Below are positions 40,563 to 54,603 of a stretch of DNA of 64,000 nucleotides, in pieces. The notes below the pieces were generated by a model. That model saw only the letters and a program-made list of their open reading frames with translations. It ran no database searches and was not told where the DNA came from. The DNA lies in the sequence record NC_019526.1, one strand, 5' to 3'. Within the stretch, counting starts at the first letter, position 1. Each line of letters begins with the position of its first letter. Position numbers and translations under genes: made by a program.

Positions 40563-40790
40563 ATGGCTAGAGAAGTTAACGCAGGTGATATAAAGGCGGC
40601 TGTACTGCGTACACTGAAAGCATACGGCAGAAAGTTGAATGATCGCAACGTTCCCTATTATTTCCTTGCTGCTACTCATAAAATGGCAATCGCTGAGGCT
40701 CGCGGGTGGCTGAATGATCGCAGTACTGTAAAGAGTACCAGAACAAGAAACGCAATTGAGCGATGGATAAAAGAATTAAATCATTTCTAA
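40563..40790 (+). CDS. hypothetical basic protein
   Basis: GAGG SD. Confidence 0.65.
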   Translation: MAREVNAGDIKAAVLRTLKAYGRKLNDRNVPYYFLAATHKMAIAEARGWLNDRSTVKSTRTRNAIERWIKELNHF

Positions 40791-41466: not shown

Positions 41467-41582
41467 AAAGTTTTAAAGAGTACTTGACAACATAAACCAG
41501 TACTGTATAATGTATTGCATAGAAAGGAGATTCCAGAATAATGGAATCTCCGATAAAACAAACTAATCAGGAGTTAATTACC

Positions 41583-42191
41583 ATGAACGTTATCGATACC
41601 ATCTATTCTAAATCTTTTATCGAACTGAATGAAGAGCAGAAAGAAAAAGCAATTGATATTATGCGGGAAATTGAAAATCAGGACACTACCCCTTATTGGT
41701 CAATTGATCTTGTTAACCAGATGAAAGAAAAATTAGTACAATATGGAATTGATGATTCTGAAATTTTGTGGTCTGGATTTTGTTCACAGGGAGACGGTGC
41801 AAGTATCAGCACTGAATCAATTAATGCTGAGATGTTTTTACGTAAGGTAAAAGCGTGGTCTAAATTTAAAGGCTTGCGTAAATTCATCTCCGAAGAAACT
41901 ATTTCTTTGAGTGTTCGCCGGGTGAGCCATCATTACTATCATGAATATTGTGTTAGTGGTAATGTTGAAATTGCTTATTGTGAAGATGTTACCGCCAAAC
42001 AAGAACAATTAGTGGACGATTTGCAAACTTTGATCACAAGTACTATTCGTGATTTGTCTCGTGAATTGTATAAAGATTTAGGGAATGAAAACGATTATCA
42101 AAATAGTGATGAAGCATTGATTGAATTGATTAATGCAAATGATTATAATTTCAAAGTTAATAGTACTGGTAACGTATTGGGGTTAGCGTAA
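41583..42191 (+). CDS. conserved acidic protein of the SGFxSQGDGA family
   Basis: F-x-EL...KEKAI, WSGFCSQGDGAS, HYYHEY, LYKDL..E.DY..SDEA; function unproven; track ATG 41541 lies in a 5' hairpin. Confidence 0.7.
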   Translation: MNVIDTIYSKSFIELNEEQKEKAIDIMREIENQDTTPYWSIDLVNQMKEKLVQYGIDDSEILWSGFCSQGDGASISTESINAEMFLRKVKAWSKFKGLRKFISEETISLSVRRVSHHYYHEYCVSGNVEIAYCEDVTAKQEQLVDDLQTLITSTIRDLSRELYKDLGNENDYQNSDEALIELINANDYNFKVNSTGNVLGLA

Positions 42192-43857: not shown

Positions 43858-44164
43858 CTGATAGTATAGAGTAGTGTTTTAGATTGATTGTAGGCCGTTG
43901 TAGGCGTTTATAGATAGTAAAGTACTGATAATGTTTAATGATCCTGGTATGTGCAAATTATTTTAATTTTTTTCGTATTGGGTATTGACGGATTATGTCA
44001 GTACTGGCATAATGTATCACATGAAGCGGCGAGATAGAAAATCATCTCAGTAGCTGGCCAGTAAAGCATACGAAGTCCTGGTGTCGCCTCAAACGGTTTT
44101 AGGTATCAAATAACACGTAACATCTAAACGTTGATGATACTGAAAACTAAAAAGAAAAAAGTAG

Positions 44165-44202
44165 TTGACAAGTACTAACGAGAATGAGATAATCTCTCTC
44201 GT
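44165..44202 (+). promoter_or_regulatory. promoter with operator-like palindrome over -10
   Basis: TTGACA-17-GATAAT; AACGAGA...TCTCGTT inverted repeat. Confidence 0.65.
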
Positions 44203-44246
44203 TGAAACAAACAAACAATCTTAATCAAAACTTAAAGGTGAATAAA

Positions 44247-44747
44247 ATGGCTAAACTGAATTCTGTGATCGTTGCTCTGCTGGCTGGTGATGTTGCTGCT
44301 CTGAATACTTCTTTCGCGTCGGTATCGATGGAAGATATGAAAACTGTTCGTAATAACTTTAACGAGTTTTACTCCAAGTTTAAAGCTGCTAATGAAGCTG
44401 CTGAAGCGGCGGCGAAAGAGCGTAAAGTACAGATCGAAACCGAAACGAAAGAACTGGTAGACGCCCTGGTAACTGCTGGCCTGGATCTGGAAATGGCCGC
44501 CGAAGTCGCCAGCCAGAAAATGGCGGTGAAATATCCCGAACTGGCTCCGAAGTCTGCAACTGGTAAAACCTGGTCGTTTGAAACCGTATTCGTTAACGTT
44601 GACGGTGAAAAACTGGAAATTGGCACCAAAGGCAACAAAGGCAGTATGAAAGCACTGGCGGCGGCACGCGAAGCAATTGCCGCAGGCAAATACAAAGATC
44701 GTGCTGAATGGATCGCCGCTCACGCCTGGACTGAAACCGAAGCGTAA
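44247..44747 (+). CDS. H-NS/StpA-like nucleoid-associated protein (divergent)
   Basis: SMEDM...EAAEAAAKERK...LVTAGLD matches the H-NS oligomerisation-domain pattern; strongly host-optimal, GC-rich codons. Confidence 0.55.
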   Translation: MAKLNSVIVALLAGDVAALNTSFASVSMEDMKTVRNNFNEFYSKFKAANEAAEAAAKERKVQIETETKELVDALVTAGLDLEMAAEVASQKMAVKYPELAPKSATGKTWSFETVFVNVDGEKLEIGTKGNKGSMKALAAAREAIAAGKYKDRAEWIAAHAWTETEA

Positions 44748-44768
44748 TAATTCAGTACTGTAATAATT

Positions 44769-44795
44769 AGCCTCCTGTAATTAGGAGGCTTTTTA
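44769..44795 (+). terminator. intrinsic terminator
   Basis: AGCCTCCT-gtaatt-AGGAGGCT then T run. Confidence 0.8.
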
Positions 44796-44826
44796 TTTTG
44801 TTCAAAAAAATATTTTAATTTATTTT

Positions 44827-45001: not shown

Positions 45002-45397
45002 AAAGGCAGATCCCATTATTTGATTTAGTTAGTACTGCGATTAATTAGTAATTCATTGCACTACATAGCAATCAATTCCTTTTGTAATAGCTCACAGGAC
45101 GCAATAAGACGCGTTTAAATGACTTCCCTATGTAATGCCATTCCTTTTTAATAAGTCCTCTTAAAACGCGTTACAGTGCGTTATATGGCGTTTTTATAAT
45201 ACTCATCATTTCTTTTTCAAAAAGTACTTGCATTAATGATCCAGTACTGCAATAATGTACTCACTGAAACGCAGTAAGCGAAGTAAGTAAATGCAAATAA
45301 GTACTTGACAAAGTGTTGTAGTACTGGCATAATGAATACATCAAAACGAAATAGCAAAGGGATTCAGTACTGAATCCCTGTTAAGGAGAAAAACCAA

Positions 45398-46795: not shown

Positions 46796-46975
46796 ATGGA
46801 AACTGTAATTGCTACTACCAAAATCAATGGACTGGATAATGAAGTTTCATTGATCCATGACGGTAACGAATATGTTGTGTCATATGGTATCTATAAAACC
46901 TATCATGACGCTATCAATGAAGCTTTTGAGGATTATATGAAAGCAATTGAAATTGCTTATGATGATTATCGTTGA
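46796..46975 (+). CDS. small acidic protein (59 aa)
   Basis: Own promoter, AGGAG SD. Confidence 0.7.
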   Translation: METVIATTKINGLDNEVSLIHDGNEYVVSYGIYKTYHDAINEAFEDYMKAIEIAYDDYR

Positions 46976-53793: not shown

Positions 53794-54159
53794 ATGGAAA
53801 AAGAATTTAAAATCAAATACAATATCAGTACCGATGGCGGTTTTGAAGTACCAGAAGAAGATCAAGAACGTCTTAATGATGTTATTATGATTGACATTTC
53901 AAATAAAATCATTCAAGGCTACCGCGAAGGTGAATTGTGTGAATCGTTGATGGATCAATTCGATGAAGTGGAAACGTTTTATCGTGGCTGGTGGAGTATC
54001 GAAGAAGTTCACAAAGTACACGAATACCGTGTATTCTGGATTAATGGCGTTAATGATATCGAAGATATCATTGTAAAAGAAAGTAGTGAATCCGCCGCCA
54101 TTCAGTACTTTAAAGATCACTACCCCAACAAACGTTATCACCATTTAGAAAAAATTTAA
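53794..54159 (+). CDS. acidic hypothetical protein
   Basis: AAGGA SD. Confidence 0.75.
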   Translation: MEKEFKIKYNISTDGGFEVPEEDQERLNDVIMIDISNKIIQGYREGELCESLMDQFDEVETFYRGWWSIEEVHKVHEYRVFWINGVNDIEDIIVKESSESAAIQYFKDHYPNKRYHHLEKI

Positions 54160-54246: not shown

Positions 54247-54603
54247 ATGATTACTAAATTCTACGCTACTCGTGAACAGGCTCGGATCGTCGCTCGTGAA
54301 GAAGGCGAAACCTTCAAAGATATGGGTAAAGATTCCCCTGCTGGTCAACGCTGGGCAGTACTGTTCCGCGAGGTCAAAGACCTGGTAGAAAACGCTAAAG
54401 CCGTTGAAATGAACGTTCCCACCAAAGAAGATAAAGAACTGACTGATGCCCTCGCTGCTGCATTCTCCGCGATGGATAAAGCCGCAGCGGTAGTACTGAA
54501 AGTACCGGAATTTGTTACCAGAAAAGTGCATTCAGTACTACAAAATAAATTCAACGGTAAACAGGTTCAAGTGTTTACTAAACGTAAAATTCCGGTCATG
54601 TAA
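54247..54603 (+). CDS. hypothetical phage protein with host-optimal codons
   Basis: FYATREQAR...KDMG...GQRWAV. Confidence 0.8.
   Translation: MITKFYATREQARIVAREEGETFKDMGKDSPAGQRWAVLFREVKDLVENAKAVEMNVPTKEDKELTDALAAAFSAMDKAAAVVLKVPEFVTRKVHSVLQNKFNGKQVQVFTKRKIPVM

Follow-up and report, generated by a model that had tools for sequence, protein, structure and literature searches.

The DNA considered here, called the window below, is a stretch of 64,000 nucleotides covering positions 186,001-250,000 of the sequence record NC_019526.1 (JQ513383.1), with window position 43900 at record position 229900. The record belongs to Klebsiella phage vB_KleM_RaK2, a jumbo myovirus in the genus Alcyoneusvirus with a genome of 345.8 kb. 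On the plus strand of the window, a coding sequence (CDS) running from the ATG at 44247 to the TAA at 44745-44747 encodes a protein of 166 amino acids (aa). It is 100% identical to RaK2 ORF332 (F403_gp203), deposited as a 'hypothetical protein', and the 1.1 kb around it is also 100% identical to the RaK2 record. What, then, does this open reading frame (ORF) encode? Profile comparison and structure modelling indicate that ORF332 is probably a very diverged, two-domain nucleoid-associated protein of the H-NS family, belonging to a phage lineage. An earlier note, made by a reader of the sequence letters, had already suggested an H-NS-like protein at this place.

Two orthologues are annotated more informatively. 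The orthologue in phage K64-1 has the RefSeq product name 'DNA-binding protein', while that in phage Muenster is a 'putative DNA-binding protein' with the record note 'HHpred hit to NP_417155.1 97.2% probability', NP_417155.1 being StpA of Escherichia coli, a paralogue of H-NS. ORF332 also belongs to PHROG 27871, which is labelled 'unknown function'. The RaK2 genome paper mentions neither ORF332, nor promoters, nor the hexamer AGTACT discussed below, and in the literature we found no paper on ORF332, on AGTACT in RaK2-type phages, or tying RaK2-type phages to H-NS. With E. coli H-NS as the query, tblastn finds no genuine phage match in 50,697 phage records; canonical H-NS is thus next to missing among deposited phages, and ordinary annotation overlooks the lineage. 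The note in the Muenster record is the sole hint. The gene and the parts of its product are as follows (window coordinates; residue ranges refer to ORF332).

44247-44747, plus strand: CDS of the H-NS-like protein ORF332 (PHROG 27871), 166 aa; codon adaptation index (CAI) 0.677, top of the window
44247-44531, plus strand: N-terminal helical domain, residues 1-95, predicted oligomerisation domain; helices 2-13, 16-22, 28-76 and 81-95; predicted local distance difference test score (pLDDT) about 80-94
44478-44492, plus strand: turn G78-L79-D80-L81-E82 from the long helix to helix 4; G-L-D invariant in the family and paired with D-G-I-D-P 68-72 of H-NS
44532-44582, plus strand: flexible linker, residues 96-112; pLDDT below 50 at 106-108, mean of the block 101-110 equal to 52
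44583-44726, plus strand: C-terminal beta-beta-alpha-alpha domain, residues 113-160, predicted DNA-binding domain; strands 113-118 and 121-126, helices 134-145 and 152-158; pLDDT 87-93
44625-44645, plus strand: loop T127-K128-G129-N130-K131-G132-S133 in place of the G-Q-G-R-T-P hook of H-NS; G129 and N130 invariant in 19 sequences

Relationship of ORF332 to the H-NS family

When 1.84 billion proteins were searched exhaustively with a profile, five clusters of relatives came up, and iterated searching gave a family of 19 proteins with identities down to 21%; BFVD adds a protein of Yersinia phage fHe-Yen9-03. All the family contigs examined carry arrays of small same-strand genes, and some of them are 168-348 kb long. 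Based on the 19 proteins, a profile was compared with that of H-NS/StpA by hhalign, which yielded a co-linear alignment of 91 columns (E 9.5e-5). A search of genome contigs for more H-NS sequences gave close orthologues alone (at least 81% identity), with no added diversity, and eight diverged plasmid H-NS paralogues were used instead. With these added, the alignment reached 120 columns, pairing phage residues 24-161 with H-NS residues 19-137 (E 6.1e-5, probability 65%). In the profile alignment ORF332 is 13-16% identical to H-NS, compared with 58% for StpA.

The significance of this alignment was evaluated with 200 column-shuffled versions of the phage alignment, in which the composition was kept. 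The full profile scored 33.8, a value reached by none of the 200 shuffles (11.9 +/- 2.4, maximum 21.1). The C-terminal domain alone, aligned with that of H-NS, scored 22.4 (E 3.2e-4), and again none of the shuffles came up to it (8.5 +/- 2.1, maximum 15.3). Since the shuffles retain the composition and yet fall far short, an artefact of coiled-coil composition is excluded. The pairings with H-NS that the earlier note had made by eye are all four reproduced by hhalign, namely SMEDM/TLETL, AAKERK/EVEER, AGLD/DGID and DGEKLEIGTKGN/ENGETKTWTGQGR. The Pfam model of the H-NS N-terminal domain, PF22470, matches residues 18-71 of ORF332 with an E value of 1.7e-4 and 21.9 bits against a cut-off of 24.5, and exceeds the threshold (26.7 bits) in an orthologue that is 76% identical (P0006). 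Altogether, seven of the 19 family members are matched, all of them in the RaK2 clade.

The order of secondary-structure elements in H-NS is defined by the crystal structure of residues 1-83 and by nuclear magnetic resonance structures of the C-terminal domain. An AlphaFold2 (AF2) model of ORF332 built from the 19-sequence alignment (mean pLDDT 85.9; an earlier model from seven near-identical sequences was poor, with pLDDT 66) shows the same order. PF22470, AF2 and the ESM Atlas agree on an N-terminal domain of H-NS type, in which two short helices and one long helix lead through a turn into helix 4; the turn pairs with the D-G-I-D-P turn (residues 68-72) that is invariant in H-NS. Between the two confidently modelled domains the pLDDT drops at residues 101-112, in agreement with the flexible linker of the H-NS family. 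Among ESM Atlas representatives, the one closest in shape is a bacterial cluster with PF22470 and PF00816, superposed over 79 residues within query residues 1-93 at 2.9 A. Among language-model neighbours, those of the N-terminal half are all Histone_HNS_N clusters, including StpA, and those of the C-terminal half are MvaT_DBD and Histone_HNS clusters; the scores of 0.5-0.74 for both halves make them leads only by the tool's own rating. For the C-terminal domain, the AF2 topology fits PF00816 and is accompanied by the hhalign result given above, with no PF00816, PDB-sequence or whole-protein Foldseek match.

Several observations weigh against the assignment. The hhalign probability for the family versus H-NS is just 59-65%; the distant members lack a PF22470 match, and none of the 19 matches the Pfam models PF00816 or MvaT_DBD/PF22055. 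BLASTP of ORF332 against E. coli H-NS is not significant (E 3.9), phmmer and hmmsearch against the PDB find zero sequence matches, and an NCBIfam search gives none either. The linker of ORF332 is less basic than that of H-NS. In place of the canonical TW(S/T)G(Q/R)GRTP motif, E-I-G-T-K-G-N is aligned, in which the central Gly alone is retained and Asn130 takes the place of Arg114. Finally, Foldseek (PDB, AFDB Swiss-Prot and AFDB clusters) and VIA-align return generic long-helix matches only; it should be noted that the whole protein was the query, with the long helix dominating, and these blanks are uninformative rather than negative; by the tools' own account, they are no proof of a difference in fold. 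On balance, we consider it highly probable that ORF332 is homologous, although remotely, to the H-NS family.

The loop that would contact DNA deserves separate description. By hhalign, W109-T110-G111-Q112-G113-R114 of H-NS is paired with I125-G126-T127-K128-G129-N130 of ORF332. The earlier note had stated that the QGR hook was lost, and the canonical QGR is indeed absent; however, the hook is substituted by K128-G129-N130 rather than deleted, with the Gly-Asn pair invariant in all 19 proteins. The residue before the invariant Gly varies in the family (K, R, T, N or S). In RaK2 the loop sequence is LEIGTKGNKGSMK, with a T-K-G-N core and lysines at 128, 131 and 135; the stretch 131-135 (KGSMK) is inserted in the RaK2 clade alone. 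The invariance of G129-N130 next to a varying residue marks a functional loop under constraint rather than one in decay.

A precedent is available in Pseudomonas MvaT, where VIETKGGNH replaces the canonical motif, Asn100 is the structural equivalent of H-NS Arg114 and enters the minor groove, and Arg80 together with a lysine network completes the contact (PMC4466236). The C-terminal sequence of MvaT was confirmed against PDB 2MXE/2MXF. LEIGTKGNK of ORF332 and VIETKGGNH of MvaT have the T-K-G-N core in common and differ in loop length. Taken together, the invariance of Gly-Asn, the pairing of Asn130 with Arg114 and the precedent of Asn100 in MvaT argue that minor-groove binding is likelier to be kept than lost; by analogy, ORF332 probably retains binding to AT-rich minor grooves, with altered detail. 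When the phage C-terminal profile was aligned with nine plasmid MvaT domains by hhalign, the result was not significant (E 0.77). This value says little, since H-NS and MvaT are equally undetectable to each other in the same test (E 0.3). A specific kinship of the C-terminal domain with MvaT was consequently dropped, and the parallel at the level of the motif alone is retained. In plasmid H-NS paralogues the hooks vary (GRGR, GNGK, GVGR), but the last residue stays basic. As a separate observation, the H-NS paralogues of an IncX4 and an IncU plasmid (L111 and L113), which adjoin hha-like genes, have the hooks SGNGKRP and TGVGRIS, an instance of natural plasticity of the loop.

The ORF332 transcription unit and its genomic setting

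The elements around the CDS are listed below in window coordinates; the strand is given where the element has one.

44144-44164, plus strand: A-rich tract, UP-element-like, adjoining the -35 element; sequence aaaactaaaaagaaaaaagtag
44165-44193, plus strand: sigma-70 promoter, TTGACA-17-TGaGATAAT, with extended -10; 11/12 positions plus TG, the same in five Alcyoneusvirus genomes
44171-44176: AGTACT site adjoining the -35 element; kept in five Alcyoneusvirus genomes, absent from the promoters of distant family members
44177-44203: inverted repeat AACGAGA-N13-TCTCGTT, spanning the -10 element and the predicted start site
44200-44246, plus strand: A/C-rich 5' leader with the Shine-Dalgarno sequence AAGGTGA (44235-44241); start site inferred from the sequence
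44754-44759: AGTACT site 7 nt past the stop codon, present in four of five relatives
44769-44798, plus strand: intrinsic terminator with a 9-bp stem, a 4-nt loop (stem-loop 44769-44790) and a T-run; kept in relatives, and a terminator is annotated in the Muenster record

The promoter consists of TTGACA (44165-44170), a spacer of 17 nt and GATAAT (44188-44193) with an upstream TG. Promoter and leader do not differ between five Alcyoneusvirus genomes, although farther upstream the DNA is in places unrelated. The A-tract ahead of TTGACA also occurs in Alcyoneusvirus relatives and at three loci encoding other family members (L011, L013 and L014), and to judge from its composition and place it may function as an UP element. 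With its own promoter and its own terminator, ORF332 is therefore a monocistronic, self-contained transcription unit, as the earlier note had maintained.

The operator-like palindrome that the same note had placed over the -10 element fares less well. The repeat AACGAGA-N13-TCTCGTT is present, but its conservation is patchy: in two of five close relatives, KP13-7 and phiKp_21, the right arm carries one uncompensated mismatch each, and among the distant relatives L011 has CGGG-N13-CCCG with the same geometry, L012 has GAGAG-N5-CTCTC in a shifted position, and L013 and L014 have none. As a conserved operator the repeat is thus the less convincing element and a candidate only. Downstream of the -10 element, a leader motif CGT(T/A)GA(A/C)A..CAAACAA (44200-44225 in RaK2) is common to RaK2, L011 and L012, although protein identity is no more than about 30-35%; the A/C-rich leader motif may be translation-enhancing or regulatory.

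The CAI was calculated with 24 E. coli ribosomal-protein and rpoA genes as the reference. The value of ORF332 (0.677) is the maximum among the 144 ORFs of the window (mean 0.39, standard deviation 0.084), which bears out the claim that this gene has the most host-optimal codons of the window, and it compares with 0.68 for E. coli hns and an average of 0.70 for ribosomal-protein genes on the same scale. CTG is the codon of every one of the 11 leucines, and there are zero rare Arg, Ile or Gly codons. The GC content is 48.9% against 32.2% in the window, and that of third codon positions is 46% against a mean of 26%; richness in Ala explains part of the excess (first codon positions, 59%).

Could this composition reflect a gene taken recently from a GC-rich host? 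The genes of distant family members, whose proteins are 21-35% identical, show the same features: their GC content is 46-51% in surroundings of 36-43%, their CAI is 0.56-0.60 against neighbourhood means of 0.37-0.45, and each has its own promoter of the TTGACA-17-TGaGATAAT type, often with an A-tract, and its own terminator. The high-expression architecture is a conserved trait of the family, which therefore favours selection for high, early expression over recent acquisition. Recent host capture as the explanation of the high GC was ruled out, since there are no close bacterial homologues and the excess in GC and CAI recurs across such diverged genes. The ORFs with the next-highest CAI (0.55-0.61), at 54247-54603, 46796-46975 and 53794-54159, all lie within the equivalent of the terminal repeat described next and may encode further abundant early proteins.

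For phage Muenster, a direct terminal repeat of 20,030 bp has been predicted by PhageTerm. Its positions 1 and ~20,030 map by BLAST to ~38,815 and ~58,670 in the window, which by homology would be the boundaries of the repeat in RaK2. The RaK2 record runs through both points uninterrupted, which suggests a permuted deposition with the repeat collapsed. The predicted left genome end is about 5.4 kb away from ORF332, which falls within the counterpart of the 20-kb Muenster repeat and is surrounded by dozens of small same-strand ORFs, a pattern typical of early regions. Two neighbours may be mentioned. ORF327 (41,541-42,191) has orthologues in Muenster and K64-1 annotated as YeeU-like antitoxin and could be a counter-defence gene of the same early region. 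ORF325 (40,563-40,790) encodes an early protein of 75 aa with a GC content of 43%, above its surroundings; in the Muenster record the orthologue is annotated with 'HHpred hits to RNA pol sigma factors'.

AGTACT sites and the possible role of ORF332

The hexamer AGTACT, of which the earlier note named ORF332 a prime candidate reader, occurs at 289 sites in the window, whereas 15.3 +/- 4.2 are expected (19-fold). Its extended consensus is the palindrome TTCAGTACTGAA, that is, (TTC)AGTACT(GAA). In 18 cases neighbouring sites are exactly 20 bp apart, for example 38757/38777/38797, 45223/45243 and 45300/45320. The density is 8.3 per kb in intergenic DNA and 3.6 per kb in coding DNA, where frames 0 and 2 are used, two of the three, and the sites are densest at 32-60 kb of the window, which overlaps the terminal-repeat equivalent. 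In all larger loci encoding distant family members (L004, L011, L012, L013 and L016), AGTACT ranks first among palindromic hexamers, with 5-7 sites per kb, while E. coli loci have almost zero. The co-occurrence of the hexamer and the family is, however, confounded, because all the loci come from related jumbo phages. Two further sites of this kind were noticed nearby. At 45300-45333 there is a second near-consensus promoter (TTGACA-17-CATAAT, 11/12 positions, with TG), where two AGTACT 20 bp apart flank the -35 element and the spacer. At 45358-45379, just upstream of ORF333, lies a perfect 22-bp palindrome, AGGGATTCAGTACTGAATCCCT, with AGTACT at its centre, which also scored as a terminator-like hairpin of the minus strand.

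What, then, might ORF332 do? H-NS silences AT-rich foreign DNA, and a phage genome of 346 kb at 32% GC is therefore an obvious target of such silencing; the known phage answers to H-NS are mostly small inhibitors. The earlier note had offered two roles, a dominant-negative anti-silencer or the phage nucleoid protein, of which the latter is the better option. We give about an even chance to the reading that ORF332 is an abundant immediate-early nucleoid-associated protein of the phage that binds AT-rich DNA, above all that of the phage itself, as a competitor of host H-NS. The near-consensus promoter, the position near the genome end and the hns-level codons lead one to expect immediate, large-scale production; host sigma-70 RNA polymerase would transcribe the gene at once, and bulk protein would follow. 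The protein would self-associate through its N-terminal domain, head-to-head and tail-to-tail in the manner of H-NS, and its C-terminal domains would dock in AT-rich minor grooves. As the GC content is 32% in the phage and ~57.7% in the host (PMC8407769), the phage's own DNA should be the main substrate. There ORF332 might pre-empt or displace the silencing filaments of host H-NS/StpA and organise the 346-kb genome, with AT-rich host islands as a secondary target. To be set against this reading, the effect on silencing, be it to counter or to reinforce it, and the target DNA are themselves what we infer.

Other explanations would account for part of the same evidence. In a dominant-negative role, the N-terminal domain would form mixed oligomers with host H-NS/StpA, poison the filaments and relieve silencing of the phage genome, in the way of H-NST, or of T7 gp5.5 through its binding to H-NS. 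The N-terminal half is the most H-NS-like part of ORF332, its site-2 turn G-L-D pairs with G-I-D of H-NS, and early, abundant expression would fit a stoichiometric inhibitor; but ORF332 keeps a complete, conserved C-terminal domain with an invariant loop, which the truncated antagonists lack (PMC7074111), and its identity with H-NS, at ~13-16%, is far under the 58% of StpA. The claim of the earlier note is without support in these respects, and such a role is unlikely. A shade less likely still is host shut-off or the silencing of host defence, in which mass-made ORF332 would condense the host nucleoid or shut down AT-rich islands of the host, defence loci among them. Such a role would suit the full-length two-domain architecture and the immediate-early expression signals, and a precedent hypothesis has been published for the H-NS gene of phage EPV1 (PMC3097231); yet phage DNA, being much more AT-rich than that of the host, would take up most of a protein that seeks AT.

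The remaining two explanations appear improbable to a similar degree. As a sequence-specific nucleator, ORF332 would read (TTC)AGTACT(GAA) and spread from there, marking phage DNA as self. The hexamer's excess and preferred 20-bp spacing, its abundance at every examined family locus, including those whose proteins are 21-35% identical, and the sites flanking ORF332 at 44171 and 44754 are all consistent with this, although the kinship of the jumbo phages confounds the co-occurrence and the hook residue before Gly varies. Moreover, domains of the H-NS/MvaT type read the minor groove as monomers and with low specificity (PMC4466236), which argues against a reader of this type for a 12-bp palindrome containing G:C pairs. 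Such a palindrome suggests a dimeric major-groove binder, and a protein of this kind among the many early ones without annotation is no less likely to be the reader; ORF332 itself has only a slim chance of being it. It is also improbable that ORF332 is no H-NS relative at all, consisting of a coiled coil and an unrelated small alpha/beta domain, with an Ala/Glu/Lys-rich helical composition as the cause of the weak matches. While the PF22470 match under the threshold and its absence in distant members, the non-specific Foldseek and VIA searches and an hhalign probability under 70% speak for this, the composition-keeping shuffles never come near the observed scores, and the alignment stays co-linear across the two domains, with the invariant turn and the loop glycine each matched to its counterpart. 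Furthermore, the C-terminal domain, which is no coiled coil, matches H-NS when taken by itself, and independent methods (Atlas shape, language model) agree with each other and with the HHpred note of the Muenster record.

In ORF332, then, a virulent jumbo phage shares with its relatives a complete two-domain H-NS-like protein of their own, kept as a separate strong immediate-early unit across very diverged phages. The DNA-contact loop has shifted from Q-G-R to x-G-N, for which the only known counterpart is in Pseudomonas MvaT. The family offers a tractable system for studying how phages handle xenogeneic silencing and organise giant genomes, as well as a natural experiment in the rewiring of the H-NS hook, and ORF332 may bear on how these Klebsiella phages, relevant to therapy, deal with different hosts. 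A more far-reaching idea, to which we assign a low probability, is that ORF332 forms the core of a phage-specific chromatin, with spreading nucleated at AGTACT, distinction of phage from host DNA, a shield from host H-NS and nucleases, and perhaps temporal regulation. If true, a protein of H-NS fold would have evolved sequence-specific nucleation, with the genome co-evolving to carry the sites.

Comparison with known systems

Compared with H-NS/StpA (PF22470 and PF00816), ORF332 has the same domain order and secondary structure, a co-linear alignment of ~120 columns, the G-(L/I)-D turn, the loop glycine and codon adaptation at the level of hns. It differs in its identity of 13-16% without a direct sequence match, in the change of TWTGQGRTP to EIGTKGN plus a 5-residue insertion, in the less basic linker, in an N-terminal region of 95 residues rather than ~83, and in being borne by a virulent phage. 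With MvaT/MvaU (PF22055; 2MXE, 2MXF) it shares a lysine-flanked Gly-Asn after strand 2 (TKGNK in ORF332, TKGGNHK in MvaT) and Asn at the position of H-NS Arg114, and MvaT_DBD is among the language-model neighbours of its C-terminal domain. As a whole, however, this domain is closer to H-NS; the likeness to MvaT is at the level of the motif only, and an equivalent of Arg80 is not established.

The full-length H-NS paralogues of plasmids (Sfh of R27; IncX, IncHI) are likewise full-length H-NS-like proteins on AT-rich mobile elements. They are 36-67% identical to H-NS, have an x-G-R/K hook and are known to form heteromers with H-NS, whereas ORF332 is far more diverged; the close similarity to host H-NS of the Stealth-type Sfh paralogues is lacking in ORF332, where BLASTP is not significant. 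T7 gp5.5 binds H-NS, and together with H-NST, T4 Arn and MotB it belongs to the early products of phages or islands that counter the silencing of AT-rich DNA by H-NS, a setting resembling that of ORF332. These are either truncated H-NS N-terminal domains or proteins of unrelated fold with H-NS or DNA as their target, and none is a complete two-domain H-NS-like protein. In particular, antagonists of the H-NST type are without the C-terminal domain (PMC7074111), which in ORF332 is conserved and confidently folded in the model. For phage EPV1, a full-length H-NS homologue has been described and proposed to manipulate silencing (Skennerton et al., 2011, PMC3097231); it is 47% identical to host H-NS and represents a recent capture, in contrast to the RaK2 family, which is phage-only and has no close bacterial relative.

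Full-length H-NS paralogues of plasmids and islands, one H-NS of a metagenomic phage (EPV1) and prophage silencers resembling Lsr2 were already known (PMC7074111). What differs here is a family confined to virulent enterobacterial jumbo phages, without a close cellular relative, that combines an x-G-N hook with a conserved immediate-early high-expression cassette.

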